64,000 nt of DNA, from NCBI RefSeq assembly GCF_000142905.1, contig NW_013657678.1, forward strand, positions 496,001-560,000, given 5' to 3'. This stretch comes from Thecamonas trahens ATCC 50062. Its lineage: Eukaryota; Protista; Apusomonadida. The translations under genes and the position numbers were made by a program. Positions 3,002-62,360 of this stretch are shown here, in pieces. Numbering within the stretch: the first letter of the stretch is position 1; the number at the start of each line of letters is the position of its first letter. Under the pieces are notes generated by a model. It saw nothing but the letters and a program-made list of their open reading frames with translations. It was not told the origin of the DNA and searched no databases.

Positions 3002-3101
3002 NNNNNNNNNNNNNNNNNNNNNNNNNNNNNNNNNNNNNNNNNNNNNNNNNNNNNNNNNNNNNNNNNNNNNNNNNNNNNNNNNNNNNNNNNNNNNNNNNNN
3101 N
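3002..3101. other. assembly gap (100 N)
   Basis: N run. Confidence 1.
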
Positions 3102-22136: not shown

Positions 22137-22722
22137 CTACACGTCTGGTGAGAGCGATGTGTCGAGGACGACGCCGTAATAGACCATGGCGAGGAGGCGT
22201 CGGCGCTGGGGATCAAGGAGCGAGGCAAAGACAAGATCGGGAAAGACGGCACGGGCCTGGCGGTTGATGTGGGCCTCGACAAGCTCGTCATCGTAGCCTA
22301 GTGTGAGCGCCATCATGGCTGATGAGGACGAGGCGTGAAAGTAGGAGAGGCATGGATCCGAGAAGCCCGCCGACGAGATGAGCATGCCGAGGTGGTGCTC
22401 GTGTGGCAGCCGCTGAGCAACACGGAGCAGGACGCCTTCCAGTTCGCGAATGTGGACGGTTGAGGCCTTGGTGGCCAGCGCTTTGCACTGTGCCCACACA
22501 TGGACCGGATCGCCGCAACTATCGGCGGCAGCGGCAGCGTCAGGGCGATGCCAGACGGCCGACACATCGATACCGTCATCGCCTGCGCCACCGACCTGCG
22601 CCACCGACTCCATTCCCCGCTGCCGCTCCATCCATGCCGCAGCCATCAGCTCGTATTCTGTCCCGACGTAGACGGTGGAAGGCGCCGAGTCGGCGTCGCC
22701 GCCGCCCGCATCGCCGTCGCCG
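22137..22722 (-). CDS. Mrr-like PD-(D/E)XK restriction-endonuclease-fold protein (Rrg7/DUF2034-like); 5' end lost in gap
   Basis: STVYVGTEYE, VGGAGDDGIDV, VWAQCK, IRELEG, GMLISSAGFS. Confidence 0.8.
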
Positions 22723-23436
22723 NNNNNNNNNNNNNNNNNNNNNNNNNNNNNNNNNNNNNNNNNNNNNNNNNNNNNNNNNNNNNNNNNNNNNNNNNNNNNN
22801 NNNNNNNNNNNNNNNNNNNNNNNNNNNNNNNNNNNNNNNNNNNNNNNNNNNNNNNNNNNNNNNNNNNNNNNNNNNNNNNNNNNNNNNNNNNNNNNNNNNN
22901 NNNNNNNNNNNNNNNNNNNNNNNNNNNNNNNNNNNNNNNNNNNNNNNNNNNNNNNNNNNNNNNNNNNNNNNNNNNNNNNNNNNNNNNNNNNNNNNNNNNN
23001 NNNNNNNNNNNNNNNNNNNNNNNNNNNNNNNNNNNNNNNNNNNNNNNNNNNNNNNNNNNNNNNNNNNNNNNNNNNNNNNNNNNNNNNNNNNNNNNNNNNN
23101 NNNNNNNNNNNNNNNNNNNNNNNNNNNNNNNNNNNNNNNNNNNNNNNNNNNNNNNNNNNNNNNNNNNNNNNNNNNNNNNNNNNNNNNNNNNNNNNNNNNN
23201 NNNNNNNNNNNNNNNNNNNNNNNNNNNNNNNNNNNNNNNNNNNNNNNNNNNNNNNNNNNNNNNNNNNNNNNNNNNNNNNNNNNNNNNNNNNNNNNNNNNN
23301 NNNNNNNNNNNNNNNNNNNNNNNNNNNNNNNNNNNNNNNNNNNNNNNNNNNNNNNNNNNNNNNNNNNNNNNNNNNNNNNNNNNNNNNNNNNNNNNNNNNN
23401 NNNNNNNNNNNNNNNNNNNNNNNNNNNNNNNNNNNN
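22723..23436. other. assembly gap (714 N)
   Basis: N run. Confidence 1.
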
Positions 23437-23691
23437 CGTCCCCCGTCCTCCTTCCCTACTCCCTCCCCCCCCCCCCCCCCCCCGCCCGCGCCGACATACA
23501 CCCTATATAACCTTCAAACAACATCCGATCAAACTGTATCCCTCTTCCTACGACCCGATCTACCTCTGCGCCCGACACCATCACGTCCACCAACCTCAAC
23601 CAACCGACCGCATTCACCTCTGCACCACCGCACTCCCGCTCGCCCTCCTCCCCTCCACACCCCACCACCACACCCTACCAACACAACTACC

Positions 23692-25578
23692 ATGTTCGGA
23701 GTGGCCCTGCTCGAAAGCAGCGGAGTGCCGTACCTGGTTCAACTCATCACGCGGTTCCTTCTCAAACATGGCCTCGACAAGCGCGGGTTGTTTGAGGTCG
23801 TGCCCAACTCGTCGTCGCTCGCCGCACTGGTGGCAGAGCTGACTCGCATTGGGGAAGCCTCTGCTGAGGATCAGAGGGCAAAACTGCAAACTCTTTTTTC
23901 TGCGTCTGAAAAACTGGATGGCCGTGCCTCAGGCTCCGAGGCCGACTTGGTATTGGACAGACAATGCTCGACATCGACGGCCTCGCTCGGCAGCCGTCAC
24001 TCCAGCGGCGATGTCGACGATCAGTGGCTCATCCCTGGCAAGCCGGCCTTTACGGTTGCCGGCCTGTTGCGGTACTACCTCGACCATCTGCCCGAACCGG
24101 TCATTCACTCGTCGCTCTACGCGCGGCTTGTCAAGCTTGGCTCCGAGTGCCAAGAGGCCAAGTCCGCGGTCTCCGAGGCGACCGGCGAGGCGCTCTCGTC
24201 GCGCGCTCGCGAGACCATGGTGCTCAACGAGCTCGGCATGATCCTCCGCATCGGCCTCCCGTGGTCGCACCTCAAGACGCTGCAAGTCATTGTCATGCTC
24301 CTGGCTAGGGTCGCTGACAATGCCTCGGTCAACTCGATGTCATCGACGTCACTGGCGGTCGCGCTCGGCCCGGCCCTTCTCCGCCCGCCGGCCTTGGCCA
24401 CCGTCACTCACACGCGCTTTGAGCCCGAGTACCTGTTGCAGATCCCGGCCGTTGTCCGCATCATCACCCTTCTCATCGACCACGCGCGCCAGCCGGGCCT
24501 CTTTGACGTCGCGGCGCCGAGCCAGGCATTGCCAGCGGCCGAACTCGACAGCGCTGATGCGTCGGGTGATGGCGACGCTGCCGACGCATCCGCGACGCTC
24601 GAGGCCGAAAAGGCTCGGGTCAAGGCTCGTGCGGCAGCAGCGGTAGCAGCTGCCCGGCCGGCGACCGAATCCACAAAGCCGCAGCCCAAGTTCAATCTCA
24701 GCGCGTCGCAGACGCGAGTGTTTGAGACTTGGCGCGCTCAGCGCGACGCCCAGTTTGCCGCCGAGTCGGATATGGCCCGACCGAGCTCGGTCAAGCAGTT
24801 TGCGCTCTCGCTCAGCGTCCTTGGCCGCCGCAATGTGGCGCTGGGTGTCGACCCGGTCCCACTCCCGCTCCGCGTTGCCTTTGACTACCTCGAGAACACC
24901 GGCGAGCTCCTCACCACCGCAGACCTCTTTGATCACGACCTTGTCTTTATCCGCGGCTCCATCGAGGCCGCTGTGGCCGAGCTGGACGCCTCGCGCAAGC
25001 CTCAGTGGACGCTTGCCGACACTGACCCTCACATCCCTGCTGGCGTCGTCCTGCACTTTTTCCGCCACTTGCCGGAGCCACTCTTACCCGACTCGTCGCA
25101 CAAGCTGCTCTCGGTCGCGCTCAACGCTCTTGTCCTCTCTGCTTCTCAGGCTACTGTCCCCGAGTCGCCGCGGTCCAACACGCTTGACGTCCACGCACTT
25201 GGTCAGATCCGCTCGGTCATTGCCAATCTACCGCCCATCAACGTGCAGGTTGTCCGCTACATGGTGGACAAACTCACGAGCTTCCTCGCAGCCGAAGAGA
25301 GCCACGGCGTGACCCTCGAACGGCTCGCCAAGGTCTTTGGCCCGCTCTGGTTCCAGGGTCCACCCACATCGTCATCTCGCGCCTCACGCACCGAAGCCTT
25401 TGCCCTTCACTCACACACCGTTGTCAAGGTCCTCCTCCTCCTCTCTGACTACATCCTCTCCCCCGTCGAACCACCGCCGCCTGCACCTGCTGACCAGGAC
25501 CACGCAGTGGCTCTCACCGACCTACATCGCTCCATCGCCAATCACCTCCAAGCCGTCCGCCAGCAAATGGCCCGCTAG
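23692..25578 (+). CDS. tandem RhoGAP-domain protein, both domains apparently lacking the arginine finger
   Basis: Domain 1: VPYLV...HGLDKRGLFEV...VAGLLRYYLDHLPEPVI...NSMSSTSLAVALGPALLRP. Domain 2: VPLPL...FDYLE...DPHIPAGVVLHFFRHLPEPLL...LPPIN...LAKVFGP. Confidence 0.85.
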   Translation: MFGVALLESSGVPYLVQLITRFLLKHGLDKRGLFEVVPNSSSLAALVAELTRIGEASAEDQRAKLQTLFSASEKLDGRASGSEADLVLDRQCSTSTASLGSRHSSGDVDDQWLIPGKPAFTVAGLLRYYLDHLPEPVIHSSLYARLVKLGSECQEAKSAVSEATGEALSSRARETMVLNELGMILRIGLPWSHLKTLQVIVMLLARVADNASVNSMSSTSLAVALGPALLRPPALATVTHTRFEPEYLLQIPAVVRIITLLIDHARQPGLFDVAAPSQALPAAELDSADASGDGDAADASATLEAEKARVKARAAAAVAAARPATESTKPQPKFNLSASQTRVFETWRAQRDAQFAAESDMARPSSVKQFALSLSVLGRRNVALGVDPVPLPLRVAFDYLENTGELLTTADLFDHDLVFIRGSIEAAVAELDASRKPQWTLADTDPHIPAGVVLHFFRHLPEPLLPDSSHKLLSVALNALVLSASQATVPESPRSNTLDVHALGQIRSVIANLPPINVQVVRYMVDKLTSFLAAEESHGVTLERLAKVFGPLWFQGPPTSSSRASRTEAFALHSHTVVKVLLLLSDYILSPVEPPPPAPADQDHAVALTDLHRSIANHLQAVRQQMAR

Positions 25579-25809
25579 TTGAAAGAGTTGCCAACTATTC
25601 GATCAACAAACACATCAACCTGTCCGCCATCCACACCAAGACCTGCCCGCCCCCCTGCCGTACATGTCAGGTCACCGCATCAATGGGCAAGTCACGCCGT
25701 TTCTTCCACCACCGGTTGGCCATAAAACTTGCAAATGCGACAGAATGCCACACCACTGAACGCACCCCCCCCTCCCCCCCCCCCCCTCTCTTTCCCCACC
25801 TCGCCCTCT

Positions 25810-28800
25810 ATGGCGGCAACTAAGCGGCTTTGTGCAGCCGAGGTGGAAGCGGTCGTACTTGTAGAAGAGGTTAATCACTTGTATATGCCCCCGTTTGTAG
25901 CCTGTGAACAGGAGAGTCATTCCAGCACGTGTGGTGGTGGTGGTGGTGGTGGTGGTGGTCAGGTTGGCCTCGATCATGGCAGAGACGACGACGACACGCT
26001 TGTGCCACCCTCCACCTCCTCCAAGCCCACCACACCCACGCTCACCACTAGCAATCCTCTCCTGTCTTCTCCCTTTACAACCTCGGAAAACTTGTTTGGT
26101 TTCACTCGTCACCCACATGCTTGCATCCTCGCACGGGCATGGTACAACAAGTGGCGCAACTCGGTCAGCTCGGCTCTCTTTGCTCCAAACTCACATCTGG
26201 CCGCTTCGTTGCCTCCAGAGTTGATGGCAAGAGCAAAGAGAGTCTTTCGCTCAGAGGCCGAGCTCGCTGCGGCAGAGGCCTCATCCTCTGCTGCTGCTGC
26301 TGCGGTTGCCGCACCTGCGCACTCGGCTGCAAAGCTCCGATCTTCGACGGCGTCGTCCTCTTCGTCTGCAGCGGCAGAGCTTGGTCTTGCTCCGGGCCCC
26401 GGGCCGATCTCCAACAAGATGCTTCTTGATCCCAAGGCCGAGTTCAAGGCCATCAAGGCCCTGCCGGCAGGCTCAGCCATCACCGACTTTGTGGTCGTCA
26501 TCTCGGCCGAGATCTGGGAGCTGCTCGCCAACACATACGGCGGTGGACCAAAGATTGTCCAGCTCATTTCGCCCGACCACAAGCTCAACGTATTTGCCGT
26601 CAATCCGGTGGTTACCGAGCCTTGGAGCTCTTCCGCTACTCCATGTGACACTCTCGCCGAGTCAACTGCCGCCGACGCCGAACCTGCCGAGGGACCGTCG
26701 ATTGCGCTCCGCGTGGCATCGATCCTCGGCACCACTGGATCAGCACTCGAGGCGTCGCTCGTGGCCTTTGTCCAGCCGCGAACCATGCTCCTCACCACCT
26801 TTTTGGGTTTTATTGTCTCGCACTTCTTCCCGGACATAGCCTTTGACTTTTCGGCGCTACAGCAGTTTGAGACAACTGCCGAGGCGCTCGACGCTCTGGC
26901 CGCTGGAGCGCCGCCAGGCTTTGTTGCCTACCGGTTCCCCGAGTCGTTTACTGGCGTCGACGATGTCTCCGACCTCTCACCGGCGTCTCTCGCAGACGTC
27001 GTCGACCAGCTCGCGCCTGATGGCGGCGCGAGCGGTAATGCCTTTGCCTCCCTCACCCTCGACGCGCTCTGCAGCGACGGCGACTATGTTGTTCTCCGAG
27101 CCTCGGCGCCGCAGCTCCCAGTCACCGTCATCACTACCATCATGACTGAGCTCCTCGCGCCTGTCCAGCGCACGCTAGCCGCCATCGAGAGTCTCAAGGA
27201 CGCCCCCACCCGGCATGCGGCTATGGACGAGCTGGCCCAGCTCTGGGCGTCGACGGTCGAGGCCGAAGCGCAGCACAGCAGCCGTGCCGAGGCAGTGACG
27301 CCGACGTCGTCGGGCCTCTCTACCCCGACCGCAGCTGGCCGTAAGACCTCACTTGTTGTGGACCTCAACCAGCTCGCCACGCAGCTTGCGCCCGTCTCCG
27401 ACTCGCCGCCGCCTGCGCCGCTCGAGATCACCGCGCCCAACTCGGTTGAGTGCATCCAAAAGTCGATTGTCTTTGGCCTTCTCCTCGCCTCGTCGAACAC
27501 CCACTGGACGCCTGCGCTCGAGCACAAGTTTACCCAGGCCTCGGCTTCGTACGCGCTCATCAAGTTCATTGACCTCTTCCGCACCACGCCCTCGTTCGCC
27601 GGCGCGTTCTCTGCCACACTACAGCCGCCAAATCTTCGCCACCTGCACTGGTTCCTCTCGTCGCCGGCTATCGACGTCCGCCAGATCGCACTCATCTTTG
27701 TCGAGGTGGTCTCGCGGCGCGTGGCCTCTTTCCGCTACCTCGGCCAGTACGTCCCGGTTGTCTACAAAGACCTTGTTCTTGCCTTTCTCGCCGACGCCTC
27801 GTCCGGCGCCGGTGCCATCCTCCACCAGGCCACCATCAGCCGCCTCGCCGCCGCCATGCCCGACGCCAAGTGGGGCCAGCTGTACTCGTCAATGGTGACC
27901 CCCGGCGTCAACCTGCTCGATCCTCTTGGCATTTTTGAGCGTTCGCCGCTCCATACCCAGACTGCTGTACCACCGGATCAGATGCTCCTCGCGGACGAGG
28001 CGCAGTCTGCGCTTGAACCGGCAAAGCCCGCGACGGCGTTTGCTACTCTCGACGCGCCGCACACGGTTCGCACGCTCCGCTTTATCCACGTCAACACCGA
28101 CTGGACGTCGGTCAAGAATGATGGCACGACGCCGGGCCTTGCGCCCAGCCCGCGTCTCGACGGACCTGAGGCGCGAAGCCGGACCCGCGCCATGACCACC
28201 TCGGGATCCAACTGGTTCTCTGCTGCCGAAAACGTCTCACGCGAGCAGCAGGCTGCAGTAGTGACCGACTACATTGCGCTGCTCGACAAGCCGGCTGTGC
28301 CATCCAGCAGTGCCAGCAGCGATGTGGCCCATTCGCCGTCGCGATCGTTGGCCTCTGTCTTTCTCCCACCGACTGATGAAGGAGATGGCCTCACCAAGCC
28401 CAAGCTCGAGGCTTCGGCCGTGGCCGACCTTGCCGACGCGGTTCTCGCCGAGTTTGACCTCGACCACTTTGGGCCCGACGGCGAGGTCCCCAGCTCGGAC
28501 CACCCTATCATGCCGTTTCTGGCCTCGGTCTACACTCGGCAGTGGCAGCTTGTCGGGCGTGTGCGGAAGCGAGCCGCTGTGGTCCAAGCCCAGCTCGACG
28601 AGGTGGCTATGGCGAAATCGAACCGAGCAAAACTCCTCGACAGCGTCGGCCCTGGCGAGAGCCTCCCACCTCGGGCTGCAACCAAGGTGAAGCAACTCGA
28701 ACGCAAGATCAAGATCCGACAGAACAAGCTGTTGAAGGCCGAGGGAGCGCTCGAAGAGACACGGACCGAGCTGGAGGCTGTGTCCTGGCAGACGCAGCTG

Positions 28801-31800
28801 CTGCAGCTCATTGGGCTCATGTACGCGCTTGTCCATGAGAACAAGCGCGACGACGACGACTCGTCGATCCAGGCCGAGCACGACAAGTGGCGCGCTGCGC
28901 TGTTCAAGCTGGCGTCATCGGTGGTTGAGGCCGCCACTTACGTCGGCATGGTCGGGCTCATGAAGGCCGGCAAGTCGTCGACCATCTCGGGCTTGGTCGG
29001 GGTTGACGTCTGCCCGTCACGGGCGTCGGCCATGACCGTCATCCCCACGGTCATTACTCATGTCCAAGGCAAGGCCGTCCCGACGCTCACCCTCCCACCC
29101 GGCACAGTCAAGGCACTCAACAAGTCGCTTGACATGATCCGCCACGCACTGAGCCACCGGGCCGAGGCAACGCGGGCAGTAGCGCTGGGCCACACCGGCC
29201 TGGAGCTGGTCCTTGACTCGGCACCGGAGCTTGTGTTTGACTCGGAGCCAGTGGCCGGCGTCGACAACGTGCTCTCGCGCTTGGTGCTGGCCAACGACAC
29301 TCTGCGGCTGGTTGAGATGCTCGACGTCGACGGGCCCAACCCGCTCGAGTCGATTGCCGACCTCGCTGACTTGCCGCTCATCGAGCTCGAGTTTGCGGTC
29401 ATGGCCCAGACCGGCATGTTTGGCCGGCTGTCGTTCATCGACTCGCCAGGCCCGAACGAGTTTGGTATGGACATGCTGTCGGACGTGCTGCGGCGGACGC
29501 TGCGGCAGGCCTCCATCATTGCTATTGTTCTCAACTACGCCTCGCTCCAGTCTTCGGCGCAGGCCAACATCAACTCGATCATCTCGGACATCACCGCCGA
29601 TTTGCAGCAGGAGATCTACGTGTTTGTCAACAAGTTTGACCAGCGCAACATCCGGTCTGGCGACATGGACGAGGACGAAGTCAAGGCTTTTGTCGCTCAA
29701 AACCTGTTTGGCACGCCCAAGTTGCAGCCTGGTCCGAGCTCGCCGGCGAGCGGATCCGGCGAGACCGGCTCTGGCACGCCAGGTGCTGCGGCTGCTGCTA
29801 CGGCTCCCTCCGGCGCCACACCTCCTGCGTCACCACCGGGGGCACAAAGCCACATTCCGCGGATCAAGCCGCAGAACGTGTTTGCGGTCTCGGCCAAGTA
29901 CGCGCAGTACGCCAACACGGCACGGCAGTACCTGTCGTCGTTTGCGCTTGCGGCAGCCGAGGCAGCCGAAGCAGCCGAGGCGAGTCGGGCGGCCAGTTCG
30001 GAGGCTGGCGAGCTGTTGCCGTCGGCTACCGGAAGCGCGACCGGTGACGAGAGCGGGAGCGACTCGGACTCGATCCAGATCTCGTCGGATGACGACGGGT
30101 CCGACCTAGCCGAGCTGGGGAGCGAGGTTGGGAGTGGTGTGGGCGATGACGGATCGTGTTGTGGCTCGTCGTCGTCGGAAGACCTCGGGTTGGTCGAGGT
30201 GCCATCGCCAGACGTGTACCCATGGGTCAAGGACTTTGCGCGGATTGCTTGGGGCGAGACGTGGACGGACGACGTGGTGTATCCGAAGATGGTGGAGGAA
30301 AACGATATTGGGTCGTTCCAGGAGGGCGTGGAGGCTGTGTGGCACAACTCGCGGCTCAACGAGCCGCTCGAGTCCATGCTCCGGCATTGCTACACCAACG
30401 CCGGCATCATCTCGTTGCGGCAAGCGCTGGTCGAGATGTCGCTGGTGTGCAAGGCGTTTGTTCAGGATGTACATGTGCAGCTCTCAACGGTGGCAGCGTC
30501 TGTGGAGAACCTTGAGTCTTTTCTCGTCACTTCGGCCACAACGCTCGAGGTCATCCGCGAAGCAGTCAACGAGATCAAGCACTTTGCGTACTCGCAGGCG
30601 TCTGCGCGGCTACCGTCACTCATTGCCGACGCCATCTCGGTGACGTCGCTCTCGCTGATGACCGATCCTGCGCAGATTCTGGATCTTGTGGATGCTGAGC
30701 TGGCGTCGCCGGACCGTGTACCCGGCACGCTCGAGGCCAAGGTGGTGCGGGCCAGGTTTGAAGCCATCTTTGATTCTCGCAAGCGTGCGCGGACGTCGGC
30801 CGGCTCTGTGCCCGACAATGTCAAGTTTGCGTCGCAGGAGCAGGCAAGCGAGTTTGTTGACTTTATGACGCACGTCTTCAAAGTGGCGTCTCTCAACATC
30901 CAGTCTGCATTGGTCTCCAAGCTTCTTTCGGGCGCGCGCGGCATCATTTCCGAGATCGAGGCCAAGGTCAAGGAGGTACTCGAGCCGCACCTGCTGGCGT
31001 ACCAGAACGACGTGCAAAAGGTGCTTGAGCTCTCGATTGTGTTCCCTGAGCTTGAGACGCCCGAGCTCGAGTCGTTCGCCCACGACATCCAGACGCACAC
31101 GCTGCGGACGCTGGACAAGTCGTCGACGCGCAAGTTTGCGGTCTTTGGCTGTTCAAATACATCCCGGTACCGTCTCTCCGCAAGTCGTCTGCGTACGAGG
31201 TGTCTGGGCGAGTGATCAAGGACGCGTTTGAGGCTGGCTTGCAGCGGGTAGCCGAGGCGACGATGGACTCGGCCGAGTCGATGTCGGAGATGTTCCAGGC
31301 CAAGGTCGATGAGTACGGATCGCGTGTGGAGCGCGAGCTGTACCGGTTGATGTATCGCATCAAGCAGACGGTCGACAATAAGCGGTCAGCACACGACCAC
31401 TCTGTCATTGTGCAACAGTCGTGCGAGGAGATGCTGTGGAAGTACAACCAGCTGGTGACTCGCCGAAAGACGCTGCTGCAGGCGCTGGAGGCCCGACTGC
31501 TGGCTACCGGGTCGTTTTCGGCCATTCAGGGCGAGGGTGGTGCCGGGCGGGCCGACGTTGGAGCCGCGGTACCGTCGTCGTCGGTCCTCTCGCCCAAGTC
31601 GTTTGAGCCGTCCGAGTCGGTCATTGCGCTGCAGCTGTTCGAGGAGATTGCCGTGGGCGTTCCGCATGGAGCAGGTGACGGCGATGGAGCAGGCGCCGAC
31701 GCGCTGGGCACAAGCAAGAGCAGCGGCGCGCAGCCAAGCCAGGCGCCGTTGATGGTGACGCCGGCGTCGGCGCTAGCGAGCGTCGAGCCAGTCCAAGTGC

Positions 31801-32630
31801 TCGAACCGCTGGGTGACTCGATTCTCGGTGTGCTGTACCATGGCTTGTACCGCGGCGCCAAGGTTGCCGTCCGCAAGGTGGCGGCGGAGAGCCCAGTCGA
31901 GCACGCGGCGGCAGTGAGCAGTGCCAGTGGCCTCTGCACCGTGGCAAACTCGTCGCTGGTTCCGGTGCTCGGCTACTCTGAGACGTGCCCAACCGCGGTG
32001 TATGTGGTGTACGAGTTTTCGCATGCCTCGCCGCTCTCGGTCCTCATCCGAAAGGAGGGCGGCCTACTCGACGAGATGGATGAGCGGGTCTCGATTCTGC
32101 ATGACGTGGTGTGCGCGGTTGCAGCGCTGCACAAGGCCGGGCGAGTGCACGCCAATCTCAACCTGGGCAACGTTCTTGTCCAGCGGTCGCGGCGGGGTCA
32201 GGTGACTGGCGCATACCTGACATCGAGCGCTGTACTGGTGCCGACCAAGCTCGACGCGTTTGAGCGGCAAGTCATGCGTGGCAAGCACATGTACTACCCA
32301 CCAGAAATCCTCGCGACATGGATGAGCGGCGAGAGTGTCGAGGCCACGGCATGGACTCAAGCAGCGGACGTTTACGCGCTCGGAGTCCTCGCTTATGAGC
32401 TCTTTACCGGTATTGCGCTGGCGGAGCATGCGCAGCACTTTACGCCCGAGGCGCTGGTGGCCGGAACCCGGCCGATGTTCCCGCAGGGCTTTGTCGATGA
32501 TCATCCAGGAGTGGGTGACCTTGTAGAGGCCTGCTGGGACGCCGACGCCGCAAAGCGGCCTGACTGCACCTCGGCACTGCAGCTGCTCAAGACCATGCAG
32601 TTTACGGTTGCGTTTGATCGGGTGTTTTAA
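25810..32630 (+). CDS. DUSP(-UBL)-helical-CrfC/YjdA-type dynamin-like GTPase-pseudokinase, paralog A, ~2273 aa; 1-nt frameshift at 31144-31146
   Basis: DUSP (WYNKW...PGPISN...WELLANTYGGGP). G1 GLMKAGKSS, G3 DSPGPNE, G4 NKFD. One added T gives KFAVFWLFKYIPVP, matching paralog B, and joins ORF 31200-32630 (kinase fold). Confidence 0.85.
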
Positions 32631-39136: not shown

Positions 39137-39236
39137 NNNNNNNNNNNNNNNNNNNNNNNNNNNNNNNNNNNNNNNNNNNNNNNNNNNNNNNNNNNNNNNN
39201 NNNNNNNNNNNNNNNNNNNNNNNNNNNNNNNNNNNN
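39137..39236. other. assembly gap (100 N)
   Basis: N run. Confidence 1.
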
Positions 39237-53949: not shown

Positions 53950-54049
53950 NNNNNNNNNNNNNNNNNNNNNNNNNNNNNNNNNNNNNNNNNNNNNNNNNNN
54001 NNNNNNNNNNNNNNNNNNNNNNNNNNNNNNNNNNNNNNNNNNNNNNNNN
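53950..54049. other. assembly gap (100 N)
   Basis: N run. Confidence 1.
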
Positions 54050-56682: not shown

Positions 56683-59600
56683 TCATCGGATAACCATGGT
56701 CCGGACAACAGTGTCCAGATCAACGGCAGTCGGCCGGTCGGCCGGCGACGGGGCAAGGCAGGTGGCAATCATGCTTGCCACCTCGGGGTGGCCGATCTTG
56801 CCGAGATCGACCGCCCACGCGGGGCCCCACACCAGGCGCTGTGCAGAGGCATACGCCGAGTGGAAGCCGAGGCCGGAAAAGAGCTGGTACAGGATCATGC
56901 CCATGGCGTAGACATCGCTCTCGTTGGTGTACCGCAGCTCCTCCTCCTCAAGCCCGTCGTTGACCCACTTGTCCAGGAGCTCCGGTGCGAGGTAGAGGGC
57001 GCGGAGAACCTCGCGCTCCGACCGCAGCGGGAGCTGCTTGGCCTTGCGCTCGATTGCCGCAAGCGGCGGCGTCGCCGCCTGGTACGCATCCGAGAACCGG
57101 GTCACCGACACTCCACCATCGATGAGGAGCTGCACGCTTGCCGGATCGCTGCTCGGAACAAGGACCGAGTGTGCATCGAGGAACTCGCAGCGGACGTTGT
57201 GCTGGTGGGCATGATCGAGCGCCTGGACGAGCCGGCGCGCCATGGCGAGCTTGGTCGTCAGCGGCAGGTCGGCAATGGCCGGCGCAGGCTGCAGGTCCGC
57301 TCGGTCGAGGAGCTTGCCGAGGCTTGCGCCTTCAATCTTGCGGCTCACGAGCGCAATGCCGCCCTTGACGAGCGTCACGCCCATAAGCGGGACAATGGCG
57401 GCGTGCGAGAGCGCCCACACGGCCTCGAGCTTGACCAGCAGGAGACGCAGCGCTCGCTCGGTGCAGAGCGCAATCTTGCGCGAGGCCACCGGGACGCCAC
57501 GGTACTCGCCCGACACAATCGGGCCCCACGCCGAGCGCGCGAGGTCCGGGCCCGACATGTCAACCAGCTCTGGCTTGAGGTAGAATTGCAGGTCTTGCAC
57601 CGAGGCCACCACTCGCGGGGGAGCGGACGCATCGGCGACGCCGAAAACACTCCGTTGCGGATAACAACCGACGACTCGGACGCACATGTTGCACTCGAGA
57701 ACCGTGTCGACGCCGGCGAGCCGTCGTCGGCGCCGCTGACCGCAAGAAGCGAGGTGAGGGGGAGGAGCGGCGCGTCGATGACCACGTCCGAGTACTCGAA
57801 CGACCGCGGAAAGAGGACTGAAGTCCGCGGGAGGCTGCTGAGCGAGCGGCCTCCGGGAGGCGCGCTTTCGTCATCAAGCCGCGACGCCATGGCTGCCAGC
57901 ACAGACCCGGCCCGCCGCCGGAACTCTTGCGTCCGCCACAGCAGCTCCTCGCACTCGACCTGCATGAGAACCGACTGGTCATGCCGCGACCGCTTGTTCT
58001 CGATCGAGAGCCGGATGCGGGCAATGAGCTTGTTGAGCTCGCGCTCAACCTTGCCGGTGTAGTTGTTCACCGCCGTCGAGACCATCTGCGACGAGAGCGA
58101 CGACGAGGCCTGGAGCGTCGACTCGAAGACCTGCGCGAGGCCTTCGGAAAAGGCCGACTTGATGAGCGCAGGGTCCACTGCGTATGTGCATGTCTTGGAC
58201 CGCTCGACCCGCGGAATCGGAATAAATTTGAAGAGCCAGAACAGCGCCCACTTGGTTGTTGTCTGCTGCTCGACCAGCCGCAGCGTGTCGCTCTTGATGA
58301 GCGAGCCAAACACGTTGAGATCAGGCGCTTCGATGTGCGGAAACTCGATTGAGGTTCCTAGAATCTCGTCGAGGTCACGCTGGTACTGAGCCAGATGCGG
58401 CTGAAGCCGGTCCTGCACCATTCGGCCCATGTTCTCGTTCACACCCTGGACGGCCTCGACTATGTGGCCAATGAGGAAGGTTTGCAGCGACGCTGCCGCC
58501 TTTTCAAACAGCGCCGTGAGCTTGGCAATGATGCCATCGGCTTGGGCCTGACCCTCAAACGGCACCGGTTCGTTGGCGAGGAGCACAGCCTCGAGAGAGG
58601 CCATCGACGGAAACGCCGACTCGGCAGCGGCCACAGACGCCGACGGCGAGACCGGCGGCGAGTTTGGTGGCGACGGCGAGGTCAGCCCGGCCTTGGCGTT
58701 CGTTAGCTCTGGCCCATACGTGTCCAGCAGCTCGCGAAGGCCTCCAGGCGAGGTCATTTCCTTGACCCGGGTCCGGGCGTCGTCGAGCACTTGCTGGATG
58801 ATGGCCGGGAGGTGCTCCAGCGCACGGGTCGCGGCGTGGTCCTTGATGTCGCGGATGGCCGAGAGAATGTCTTCGTGAGCCGAGGCTGAGACCTCGAGGA
58901 ACTTCTCAAGCGAGACGACCGACGAGGCGACGGCGGCGAGGTGCATGGTGACGTCGCGCTCGAGCTTGGAAGCGATTGCAGACGCACGCATGAGCGAAGT
59001 CCGCAGCGAGATGACGCCGGCGTTGGTGTAGCAGTGGCGCAGCATCGAGTCAAGCGGCTCGTTGAGGTGCGAGTTGCGCCACACAGCGTCGATACCTTGC
59101 ATGAACGTCCGCACATCGTTGTTGGCGAGCATGCGCGGATAGACCTCGTCGTCGGCCCATGTCTCACCCCACGCAATGCGTGCAAAGTCCTCGACCCACG
59201 GGTAGACGTCTGGGTCAGGCACCGAGATGTGGTTGTCGAGATTGAACTCACGCTCGAGCCACGAGACGTTGTCCGACGCGCCGGCCTGCTCGCCGTCGGC
59301 GGCGTCCGAGCCGTGGCTTCCACCACCGCTCGGCGGTCCGCCCACCGACTCGGAGTCTGAGCTCGAGTCGAGGTCTGAGATGTCGATCGAGTCCGAGTCG
59401 GAGCCGTCGCCATCTCCATCGCCGCCGCTGCCGCCTTGACCATCACCGGAGCGGCTGGCACGATCCGACGATGCACCGTTGGCCGCCGCCGAAGCTGACG
59501 ACGAGCATGTTGACCCCGAAAGCGGCGGCGGTGATGCCGACTCGGGCTGGGCCTGTGTGAGAATGTGATGGCGGGCAGTGTTGGCGTACTGCGCAAACTT

Positions 59601-62360
59601 GGCAGAGACCGGGAAAATGTTCTCGGGCCGGAGCGAGATCCCTGAGCGGACGTCGGCGAGGTTGGCCATGATAAAGTCGCGGACTTGGGCCTCGTCCATG
59701 TCACCGGATGCAGTGTTCCGTTGGTCAAACTTGTTGACAAAGACGTAGGCCTCCTGGTCGACGTCGGCGGTGGCCTCGGCAATGGTGGCGTTGATGGCAA
59801 CTTGCTCCTCCGAGTTGAGGGCGGCGTAGTTGAGGACAACGGCGACGATGGAGGCCTGCTTGAGAATGCGCTTGACGACGTCGGAGAGAATGTCCATGCC
59901 CTCCTCGTTGGGCCCGGGCGAGTCGATGAACGAGAGGCGGCCAAACATGCCGGTCTCGGCCATGACTGCAAACTCGAGCTCGACTTGCGGGAGATCCCGG
60001 AGCTCGGTGATGTGAAGCAGCGGGTTGGCACCATCGATGTGAACGTACTCGCAGAGTCGAATTACGTCGTTGAGGGCAACAAGAGTGGTGTGGATAGCGT
60101 CGAGGCCGACAACAGGCGTGGGCGTAAAGTGAAGCTGCCCATTGACAACCATGTGGACAATGTCGTCGACAACCCTGTTGCCGAAAAACGAGGTCGTCTC
60201 GTCCTCGTAGGTTGCGGAAAAGTGGGCGGCGAGGGTGACGACGGTTGTGTTGAGGACGAGACAGGTCGACTCGGGAATGACGAGCGTGGGGAGCTTCTTG
60301 CCCTCAACATGTGTGATGAGCGTCGGAATGACGGTCATGGCCGTCGATCGCGAAGGGCAGACATCGAGGCCGACGAGACCTGAGATGGTTGACGACTTGC
60401 CAGCCTTCATGAGGCCGACCATGCCGACGTAGGTAGTGGCCGAGACGACGTCGCGGACAAGTCCCTCGAGCTCACCGGCCCACTGCGTATACTCGCCGAG
60501 GACCTCGAGCGAGGCCTCGCCGACCGAGTCGACGACAGCCGACGAGGCCGAGACAAGGGTGTCGACGAGGGCAATGAGGGCAATGACCTCGCGCTGCCAC
60601 TCGACCGACTCGAGCTCGGCACGCATTTCAGCAGCCTCGGCGGCGGCAGCCTCGCGCTTGGCTGATGCAGCCTTGAGCTTGCGAGCAAGCTGCCTTCGCG
60701 GCGCCGAGTCTGCCGCGATCTGAGCCTCGAGCCTGGATGCCGCGTCCGAATGGCGAGTCAGCCGCGCGTTGACCTCCGCCAGTCGTGCGAGCAGCTTGCC
60801 GCGCCGCGACTCGACGCCGGCAAGCTCCGGGAACGACGGATGGTCTTGGCCCTGATGCGGGAGTGCGTGCGGACGAAGGACCGGCGGCGCACCACTCTCG
60901 AGCTGCGCGAGGAGCGCCGAGAGGATGCGCTCAGCGGTCGGGGCCGTGGGCGCGGCGAGGAGCGCGGCGAGTGCGGGCGAGCCAGCCACGTGGGCAAGCG
61001 TCGCTGGGTCAAAGCCGTGGCCCTGGGTGACAAACAGTTCCTTGCGTCGCGAGGAGCGGACATCGGCCTGCTGGCCACCAACGTCACCAGCACGGAGCGC
61101 ACGGAGTGCGCGGAGACGGCCGGAAAAGTAGGTGATGAGGACGTCGCGGACAGCACGCGGGAGGACAGCCGGGAATGAGGCGAGCGACGGGCAGCGAAGG
61201 ACGACGAGCTCGATGAAAAGCAGGGTCAGATCGCGGATAATCGGATTCGACGAGCCGAGGTGGTCGTCGAACCGGCGGAGGTGCGGCGGCATGACGGCGG
61301 CGTCAAATTCGACCGCAAAGTCATTGAGAGTGAGTAGGCCGAGTAGGTGACCGAGGGCGCGAAGAACGGTCGGCTCGTCGAGGGCGTCTTCAAGCGACGG
61401 CCGCCAGACCTTGTTTGCAGCGGCGAGAAGGAGGCCAAATATGATCGGCTTTCGCGAGCACTGCAGCGCCTGTGAGTCTTGCGAGCGGGTCCATAGGCCG
61501 GCGAGGGCATCGATGGCGTCGAGAGCGTTAGGCGCGGCGCGGAGGTCGTCGATGGCGGCAATAGTGGCGTCAACCATGGCGAGCTTGGACGACATGAGCT
61601 CGAGAACAAGGTCCGTTGTCACGTCCCCACTCGCAGCAACAATGAGGATCTGGTCGTCTTGCGCCGCAGCGAGCAAGAGGCCATCGCCAGCAAGGCACAG
61701 CTCTGCGGCGTGGTGCGAGTGGTAGTCAAAGACCCAGGCTGCGAGCGGAACCTCACCCTGTGCCACAAACAGGTCCTCGGCCAGGAGGCAAAAGTGGCTG
61801 AGCGTGGTCGCAGCGTCGACAACAAGAGTCACGAGGCGGGCAGATGCGGGCGAGTCGACGACACAGACGTGAAAGGCGACAAGATGGCCGGATGCTTCGA
61901 GCGGAAGCACGTCATCGGCAAACAGATGCTTGCGAAGATACTTTGGCCCGCCACCGTAGCGCTCAACAAGTCTCTCCCAAACAGCCTCCGGCACAAACAC
62001 GCCATTGAGGTCCGAGATGGCGTTGGCGCGAGGCGATGACGACGACGACGAGGCTGGGAGCGAGGAGGGAGAGATCAACGATGAAGATGACGACGGCGAT
62101 GATGTGGGACGAGAGGGCGAAGAGAGGGCCGACGAGGGAAGCAGGTGATGCTTGGAAGAGGTGGCGACCAACAGTGGTGCCAGCAGAGGGGTGTTGTTGA
62201 TTGGCGGCGGAGTGGGGCCGCCCGACACCACATGCTTGTGCCACGCGAGGAACCAGTTGAACGAGAGGAGGCAGAGTGAGCTGTGCTCGACCTCGACGTT
62301 GCCTGCCGACTCGACAGATGACGCCACTGCCAGGCAGGCCGCCACTTCCTCGTTGTCCAT
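56683..62360 (-). CDS. DUSP(-UBL)-helical-CrfC/YjdA-type dynamin-like GTPase-pseudokinase, paralog B, ~1892 aa; 1-nt frameshift probably at 57644-57647
   Basis: DUSP (WFLAWHKHV...PPPINN...VPEAVWERLVERYGGGP); YVGMVGLMKAGKSSTISGLVG identical to paralog A; kinase fold in ORF 56683-57687. Confidence 0.85.

Follow-up and report, generated by a model that had tools for sequence, protein, structure and literature searches.

A CrfC-type dynamin-like GTPase module of bacterial kinship joined to a DUSP domain and a predicted pseudokinase in Thecamonas trahens

We analysed a stretch of 64,000 nucleotides from the apusomonad Thecamonas trahens ATCC 50062 (contig NW_013657678.1, positions 496,001 to 560,000; hereafter the window, whose G+C content is about 62% and whose numbering is used throughout). 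On its forward strand, at 25810-32630, lies one gene of about 2273 codons once a single missing T is restored. In the deposited sequence this gene is divided between two open reading frames (ORFs) on the (+) strand, ORF A (25729-31215, frame 1), in which the first plausible ATG is at 25810, and ORF B (31200-32630, frame 3). Pfam recognises three domains in the ORF pieces (DUSP, Dynamin_N and a protein kinase domain), and the protein as a whole reads from its N-terminus as a DUSP domain, a poorly resolved strand-and-helix segment with a helical region behind it, a disordered linker, a dynamin-like module, a further linker and a kinase fold that is dead by prediction. The dynamin-like module is complete, comprising neck helices, a G domain with all of its GTP-binding motifs and a helical stalk (Table 1). 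A first-pass annotation of this DNA had described a single ORF of about 2270 amino acids after a one-base repair, with an N-terminal DUSP and ubiquitin-like (UBL) region, a bacterial CrfC/YjdA-type GTPase with its stalk and a C-terminal pseudokinase, and had proposed that the product is an undescribed membrane-remodelling or immune effector.

The continuity of the gene depends on one site, at which the text of the window is split between the two frames as gcg gtc ttt|ggc, with TTT in a position where TTTT keeps the frame. Logan contigs of four runs were compared with window positions 29800-32630, and in all three of the DNA-type runs that cover the site a T is inserted behind 31143. These are X1, a run labelled as the same organism and taken from a sample other than that of the 2010 runs, X2, an estuary metagenome, and X9, a marine metagenome; the latter two carry a few substitutions relative to the reference and therefore represent independent strains. 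In line with this, the environmental orthologue P0004, from a Tara Oceans metagenome contig, is uninterrupted over the junction through RKWAVFWLLKYIPVPSLRK (with 74% identity to the target ahead of the junction and about 45% over ORF B), and the paralogous sequences P0001-P0003 are likewise continuous over this region. Up to the junction itself, each frame is free of stops and conserved in sequence. The frame change is a homopolymer under-call in the reference assembly, and the single long ORF of the earlier annotation stands. A 44-nucleotide GT..AG stretch at 31141-31184 would also mend the frame if it were removed as an intron; we rejected this candidate because the homologues keep the residues that it would delete (WLFKYIPVP), and because the contigs show a plain insertion of one nucleotide with no joints to be seen.

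It could be argued instead that the frame shift is genuine in the sequenced strain, so that the locus would be a pseudogene, or else a DUSP-GTPase gene followed by a separate small kinase-like gene. The deposited assembly does carry the shift, and our protein searches returned neither a near-identical product of the locus nor any protein of at least 448 amino acids from it. We consider this explanation very improbable, given that the extra T is found in a run from the same organism as well as in two independent metagenomes, that the site is a homopolymer in a draft assembly with N gaps, that conservation holds in both open frames as far as the junction, and that the neighbouring paralogue P0002 contains a second likely error of the same kind. 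It is probably the frame error at the junction that has kept the product of the locus out of public protein sets. In P0002, the gene model omits a 35-nucleotide GT..AG 'intron' at window positions 57595-57629 (-); the orthologue P0003 is continuous at this place, and the frames of the window match P0003 on either side of a CCCCC run. Judged from these alignments, the mini-intron is probably a second homopolymer frame error masked by the gene model and no true intron. Finally, contigs from a seawater metatranscriptome (X14) are identical to positions 29887-30103, 31176-31369 and 32040-32190 of the target, which suggests that the gene is transcribed.

At the centre of the protein lies the G domain, whose motifs G1 to G5 are all present as the first-pass annotation had quoted them, and occupy invariant or nearly invariant columns in a 107-sequence alignment of the family. 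Pfam Dynamin_N (PF00350) matches amino acids 1046-1252 (E 1.9e-7; 31.7 bits against a cut-off of 27, and 34.4 bits in a scan of the organism's own genome), and the GTPase and stalk together match the NCBIfam CrfC model NF007368 with an E-value of 5.3e-44 and 150.6 bits. Because NF007368 is an equivalog model with a curated cut-off of 1146 bits, far above this score, the target is to be regarded as a CrfC homologue and not as an equivalog. BLASTP against Escherichia coli K-12 CrfC, the gene for which is now annotated as rdcA, gave 31% identity over 307 amino acids (E 2e-31), together with a second block of similarity at WV.DFA...W. With the G core as a phmmer query, E. coli CrfC was matched at 6.9e-34 and bacterial homologues at about 1e-39, whereas the other Dynamin_N ORFs of this genome (13 loci) reached an E-value of only 0.0079 at best. 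The T. trahens genome contains at least a dozen of these other Dynamin_N loci, and in view of this contrast the target does not group at the sequence level with classical dynamins or mitofusins. The likeness to CrfC/YjdA that the earlier annotation had pointed out is thus upheld, as is the dissimilarity from the eukaryotic families: by sequence comparison, the closest relatives of the dynamin-like module are bacterial CrfC/RdcA(YjdA)-type proteins.

E. coli CrfC/RdcA and a group of bacterial proteins of about 800 amino acids share with the target the motifs MKAGKS(S/T), MT..PT.I.H, LNDL/NDT.RL, (I/L)E.EF, D(S/T)PGPNE, NKFD and WV.DFA, a helical C-terminal half that is colinear with the CrfC profile, and the lack of a transmembrane segment. 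The target differs from CrfC/RdcA in its much lower score against the equivalog model, in lacking the clamp-binding motif, in two long disordered inserts, and in its setting, a eukaryotic protein about 2273 amino acids long that has the DUSP and helical region ahead of the module and the pseudokinase behind it. Both insert sites are also filled, by differing sequences, in P0002, P0003 and P0004. We also observed that X14 has loose-ended contigs at about 29952-29983, typical of low-complexity repeats.

To place the module structurally, we used an AlphaFold (AF2) model of amino acids 964-1778 built from the family alignment. The model, with a predicted local distance difference test score (pLDDT) of 81.8 and a predicted template modelling score (pTM) of 0.71, begins with two helices, continues with the G domain and ends in a long helical stalk, the two disordered low-complexity inserts interrupting it. 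Its top matches in a Foldseek search of the PDB are SynDLP (7zw6; 2e-8), Cj-DLP1/2 (5oxf/5owv), mitofusin-1 (MFN1, 5gom), BDLP (2j68/2j69), IniA (6j72) and LeoA (4aur), with E-values from 2e-8 to 1e-3; the matches to SynDLP, Cj-DLP1/2 and BDLP are full-length, with low TM-scores of 0.2-0.3 over that length. The model and these matches are consistent with the layout of the dynamin superfamily, a large G domain with a helical stalk or neck, and with the stalk that the first-pass annotation had placed behind the GTPase. What the target appears to share with the BDLP-type proteins and mitofusins is the modelled arrangement of a G domain between long helices that form a neck and a trunk. Unlike the target, those proteins have demonstrated paddles or transmembrane anchors, and their phmmer similarity to the target is not significant; a phmmer search of the PDB with the G domain and stalk found no dynamin-like structure by sequence, a CrfC structure included. 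The stalk of P0002 also aligns with the CrfC profile, over positions 346-709.

The membrane paddle of BDLP-type proteins lies where the outgoing stalk helices give way to the returning ones. In the target, the place between these two sets of helices is taken by an aromatic and hydrophobic motif, RKFAVF-WLFKYIPVPSL, where the consensus of the bacterial family is W....WG.E. This motif may form a membrane- or partner-binding tip, at a position that we infer and do not read from the model. No transmembrane segment is predicted anywhere in the protein, the maximal 19-residue hydrophobicity of 1.55 lying below the transmembrane level.

Behind the stalk, the kinase domain matches PK_Tyr_Ser-Thr (PF07714; E 5.8e-21, 75.4 bits) and PF00069 (56.8 bits), above the gathering score, and its closest solved relatives are kinases of the tyrosine kinase (TK) and tyrosine kinase-like (TKL) types, namely CSK, KSR1/2, CTR1 and CERK1. 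An alignment with CSK and with P0001, whose kinase is intact, indicates that the catalytic lysine, the HRD aspartate and the DFG motif have all been lost, as VAVRK, HAN and GAY, respectively; the domain is, by prediction, a catalytically dead pseudokinase, as had been claimed in the annotation. The orthologue P0004 keeps the identical Lys-to-Arg and Asp-to-Asn changes. Since it does so at only about 45% identity, the pseudokinase appears to be old and maintained rather than in decay.

At the other end of the protein, the DUSP matches PF06337 at E 1.3e-7 and 32.4 bits, above the cut-off of 29.3 (37.8 bits in the own-genome scan, and 35.8 and 35.4 bits in paralogues), and carries the typical W..W, GP.P.PI.N..LL and YGGGP motifs; a DUSP is also found in P0002, P0003, P0005 and P0007. 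The DUSP of the first-pass annotation is thereby confirmed, and its UBL is not: Pfam scans gave no match to a UBL family after the DUSP, and the AF2 model of the N-terminus, built from a six-sequence alignment, has a pLDDT of only 46. Foldseek returned weak armadillo-like rows for this model (E about 0.05), which we did not use, and ESM Atlas leads for P0002 name UBL/ARM families of the USP9X type at 0.82, below the 0.9 level. The Pfam scans detected no UCH/USP catalytic family, and sequence searches of the PDB with the DUSP regions of the target and P0002 found no structure. The DUSP is thus shared with USP4, USP11 and USP15, from which the target differs in having no USP catalytic domain and in the insert that interrupts its DUSP.

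The target is one of four CrfC-like genes in the T. trahens genome, which are arranged as two pairs, each with its members 25-30 kb apart and on opposite strands. The first pair is formed by the target and P0002 on contig C2 (at window positions 28870 and 59553, about 25 kb apart), and the second by P0001 and P0005 (AMSG_10125) on contig C57 (at about 69197 and at 98812-100314, about 30 kb apart). P0002 corresponds to the NCBI entry 'TKL protein kinase [Thecamonas trahens ATCC 50062]', which is 100% identical to window positions 56686-62360 (-); this identity refutes a trypanosomatid origin of the DNA, which its G+C content and long ORFs might have suggested. All four have the dynamin-like module. 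The target and P0002 add to it a DUSP and a pseudokinase; in P0001 no DUSP was detected and the kinase is intact, with VAIK, HRD and DFG; and P0005 has a DUSP and no kinase. Environmental relatives (P0003, P0004, P0007 and P0008) belong with these paralogues to the family of the target, with the same order of modules, P0007 combining a DUSP and a dynamin-like module without a kinase. The gene pairs recall the paired dynamin-like genes of bacteria, many of which come in pairs (PMC6104087).

To trace the family further, we searched 1.84 billion representatives exhaustively with HMMER, which gave 753 matches, 121 of them at E <=1e-30. After a few eukaryotic relatives, nearly all of the best 150 of these 753 matches are proteins of about 800 amino acids; the dozen family members that were looked up are bacterial or metagenomic, and those that bear a name belong to Psychrobacter, Vibrio, Pseudoalteromonas, Cytobacillus and a metagenome-assembled genome of the Negativicutes. 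Bacterial or metagenomic members are also found fused to TerD at the N-terminus (P0029, P0082 and P0090), to TerB at the N-terminus (P0053, P0106 and P0143) or to FHA at the C-terminus (P0031, P0099 and P0105), which, as far as domain content can tell, suggests a stress- or signalling-related setting for these bacterial proteins. P0006 is a tandem double GTPase with two G domains. In an unrooted IQ-TREE phylogeny of 151 G domains, from which P0003 and P0005 (whose G domains are split by large inserts) and P0004 (which has no G domain) were omitted, the five eukaryotic rows form one clade among bacterial-type sequences, with a Shimodaira-Hasegawa-like approximate likelihood ratio test (SH-aLRT) support of 98. 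The nearest neighbour of this clade is a long branch.

A GTPase whose nearest relatives are bacterial could in principle have come from bacterial contamination or from a chimera in the assembly. We regard this as extremely improbable: the module shares one ORF with eukaryotic DUSP and TKL kinase domains, its G+C content of about 62% is that of the rest of the window, and the arrangement recurs four times in the genome and again in independent metagenome contigs. More probably, an ancestor of this apusomonad lineage took up a bacterial CrfC-type dynamin-like gene by horizontal transfer; the gene would then have been joined to a DUSP module of eukaryotic kind and to a TKL kinase, and the whole duplicated, and in two of the copies, the target included, the kinase would have turned into a pseudokinase and yet been conserved.

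With regard to function, we propose that the horizontally acquired CrfC-type GTPase has been reused as a GTP-gated, self-assembling signalling scaffold or regulator, and not as a dedicated fission machine; we hold this explanation, the best that our analysis yields, with moderate confidence. In such a scheme, GTP binding and hydrolysis, dimerisation of G domains and assembly of stalks, as elsewhere in the superfamily, would switch the oligomeric state of the protein, and this switch would control what is bound by the DUSP and helical region at the N-terminus and by the pseudokinase at the C-terminus. A likely partner would be the paralogue P0001 with its intact kinase, and the aromatic tip motif may add a peripheral contact to a membrane or to a partner. 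The logic is akin to that of E. coli CrfC/RdcA, the one member of the family to have been studied. This protein is reported to form soluble oligomers and to lack a membrane-binding motif; the GTP state of RdcA reportedly decides the activation of the diguanylate cyclase DgcE, and CrfC is reported to bind the beta clamp (PMC6510439, PMC6374313), the clamp-binding motif being the N-terminal 41-QLALP (PMC6374313). The combination of a GTPase with a kinase domain in ROCO proteins offers a second parallel. We favour a regulator over a membrane machine because RdcA is reported to be soluble and to act according to its GTP state, because CrfC reportedly has no membrane-binding motif, because the target has no window of transmembrane grade, and because bacterial relatives are fused to FHA, TerD and TerB.

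Several points weigh against this proposal. The mechanism is drawn from family resemblance only, and with about 31% identity and 150.6 bits against a cut-off of 1146 the biology of RdcA need not transfer to the target. A search of the genome with E. coli RdcB (YjcZ) did not find this partner protein, a single-protein query being a weak one, and the clamp-binding pattern (QLxL[FPLIM] or QLxLx[LF]) occurs nowhere in the target protein. The closest solved folds are those of membrane-active dynamin-like proteins, and the hydrophobic WLFKYIPVP, placed where BDLP has its paddle, keeps a membrane role a live alternative. Modelling is poor for the N-terminus and for the part of the stalk that follows the frame error. 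The direction of transfer rests on distribution, since the tree has no root and the eukaryotic clade has a long branch as its sister. As for expression, the X14 contigs do not span the junction of ORFs A and B, and carry-over of DNA is possible.

The membrane-remodelling function put forward in the first-pass annotation would take a different form, in which the G domain and stalk assemble through the aromatic tip and tether, fuse or repair membranes, the DUSP and pseudokinase being regulatory or targeting additions. The best structural matches of the module (SynDLP, Cj-DLP1/2, BDLP, IniA, LeoA and the mitofusins) are all membrane-active, the GTPase motifs are all intact, the conserved aromatic motif at 31129-31178 sits at the position of a BDLP-type paddle, and the paralogues are paired like many bacterial dynamin-like genes (PMC6104087). 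Set against this, CrfC/RdcA, the nearest family by sequence, is reported to be soluble and to lack a membrane-binding motif, the target has no predicted transmembrane segment, the tip motif is placed by deduction and not by the model, and the Foldseek TM-scores are low in a comparison for which a CrfC structure is lacking. We therefore consider a membrane-remodelling role possible and worth bearing in mind, though rather unlikely.

The other half of that first guess, an immune or stress effector, would make the protein a descendant of a bacterial dynamin-like defence protein, with the pseudokinase as a sensor or executioner, guarding the cell against viruses or membrane damage. The fusions of bacterial family members to the stress and signalling modules TerD, TerB and FHA would fit such a role, as would the weak matches of two distant bacterial relatives to the Eleos LeoA/LeoBC models (P0031 at 2.5e-7 and P0150 at 7.5e-5) and the lineage-specific expansion of the family to four paralogues. 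However, the GTPase and stalk of the target match none of the PADLOC models, the matches of its kinase to defence kinases reflect the generic kinase fold, and neither the gene neighbourhood nor the expression data give any pointer to immunity, so that we judge an immune function improbable. With CrfC/RdcA reported as soluble, no transmembrane segment predicted and no PADLOC match, the idea of a membrane-remodelling or immune effector is left unsupported in either form.

A more elaborate version of the regulator that we favour can also be imagined, and seems to us distinctly unlikely as it stands. According to it, contacts between G domains and between stalks would bring the four paralogues together in one assembly, as happens with paired bacterial dynamin-like proteins. 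The level or the hydrolysis of GTP would switch the active kinase of P0001 by way of its pseudokinase sisters (the target and P0002), much as in KSR and RAF, and the DUSPs would tie the assembly to partners in the ubiquitin system. If this were true, the family would be a novel kinase machine under GTPase control, which apusomonads would have made out of a bacterial dynamin-like protein gained by horizontal transfer; it would parallel ROCO/LRRK2 signalling on a dynamin basis and might act at a membrane by way of the aromatic tip. ROCO proteins such as LRRK2 are like the target in principle only, in that a self-dimerising GTPase and a TKL kinase or pseudokinase are combined in one polypeptide; the target has no Roc-COR, and its GTPase belongs to another class, so that the relation is one of analogy and not of membership.

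As to novelty, in the literature that we searched no dynamin-like GTPase joined to a DUSP or a kinase is described, and no CrfC-type protein is reported from a eukaryote, the CrfC/RdcA type being described from bacteria. A broad 2023 survey of eukaryotic dynamin-related proteins omitted those of bacterial type when it analysed phylogeny (PMC10280142). The architecture can therefore be called undescribed, as in the first-pass annotation, insofar as no paper on it was found; it is not absent from the catalogues, however, since NCBI and UniProt contain entries for the paralogues under the names 'TKL protein kinase' and 'DUSP domain-containing protein', for which these Pfam domains are precomputed. 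With a complete bacterial-type module in a eukaryotic gene, fused to a domain of the ubiquitin system and to a kinase, intact and present in four copies, the family would illustrate cleanly how a gene gained by horizontal transfer can be fused to other domains, and it represents a natural design of GTPase plus kinase built on dynamin. Among the paralogues, the module is accompanied by an active kinase, a pseudokinase or no kinase, which should be useful for asking how a dynamin-like GTPase may regulate a signalling domain. The family is narrow (T. trahens and a few marine environmental sequences), and the organism is hard to manipulate. On the practical side, the reference assembly interrupts the locus; both the site of the error and independent read support for its correction are now given.

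Table 1. Features of the DUSP-GTPase-pseudokinase gene, in window coordinates.
Feature	Position	Strand	Basis or remark
Whole gene	25810..32630	+	ORFs, homologue continuity, extra T; intron-free; alternative upstream ATG 25735
DUSP (aa 105-250), interrupted by ~80 aa of low complexity	26122..26559	+	Pfam PF06337; WYNKW, GPGPISNKMLL, YGGGP
Strand-and-helix segment after the DUSP (aa ~300-435)	26707..27114	+	Low-confidence AF2; possible UBL, unverified
Conserved helical region (aa ~438-700), possibly ARM/HEAT-like	27121..27909	+	Alignment (blocks from 27466 and 27685); pLDDT 70-89 in parts
Two long helices ahead of the G domain (N-terminal neck/stalk)	28702..28929	+	AF2 H2-47, H55-77, pLDDT 85-95
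CrfC-type G domain, G1-G5 intact	28933..30000	+	NCBIfam NF007368, BLASTP to E. coli CrfC, invariant columns, AF2, Foldseek
G1 GLMKAGKSS	28954-28980	+	
G2 AMTVIPT	29029-29049	+	
G3 DSPGPNE	29440-29460	+	
G4 NKFD	29629-29640	+	
Disordered Ser/Pro/Ala insert in the G domain	~29716-29868	+	AF2
G5 VSAK	29887-29898	+	
Second disordered insert, acidic and Ser-rich, at the junction of G domain and stalk	30001..30198	+	pLDDT <50, piece residues 439-492
Helical stalk, crossing the frame error into ORF B	30199..31520	+	AF2 H509-800, CrfC profile 354-453, Foldseek, homologue continuity
WVKDFARIAWGETW block of the family, opening the stalk	30217-30264	+	Family alignment
Aromatic/hydrophobic motif RKFAVF-WLFKYIPVPSL between outgoing and returning stalk helices	31129..31178	+	Conserved in P0001-P0004
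T run under-called by one base (TTT, should be TTTT)	31144..31146	+	Extra T in X1, X2, X9; homologues continuous
Low-complexity linker from stalk to kinase-like domain	31521..31793	+	Sequence, alignment
Predicted pseudokinase, TK/TKL type	31794..32582	+	PF07714, paralogue alignment, alignment to CSK
Beta3 Lys to Arg (VAVRK)	31860-31880	+	
HRD to HAN (HANLNLGN; Asp to Asn)	32145-32180	+	
DFG to GAY	32202-32228	+	
APE-like YYPPE retained, as is the C-lobe	32292-32312	+	
Stop codon	32628-32630	+	

Elsewhere in the window there are four N gaps, which are scaffold gaps (3002-3101, 22723-23436, 39137-39236 and 53950-54049). The patch of low G+C at 22-24 kb was considered as a feature and turned out to be nothing but one of these gaps, and the 'ORF' at 22675-25578 is partly an artefact of the same 714-N gap, ORFs listed over N gaps being unreliable. 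In the remainder of the genome, six further DUSP loci lie outside the dynamin-like family (C15:384760, C55:218193, C1:205475, C52:248105, C23:315518 and C8:241659) and presumably encode USP-type deubiquitinases.

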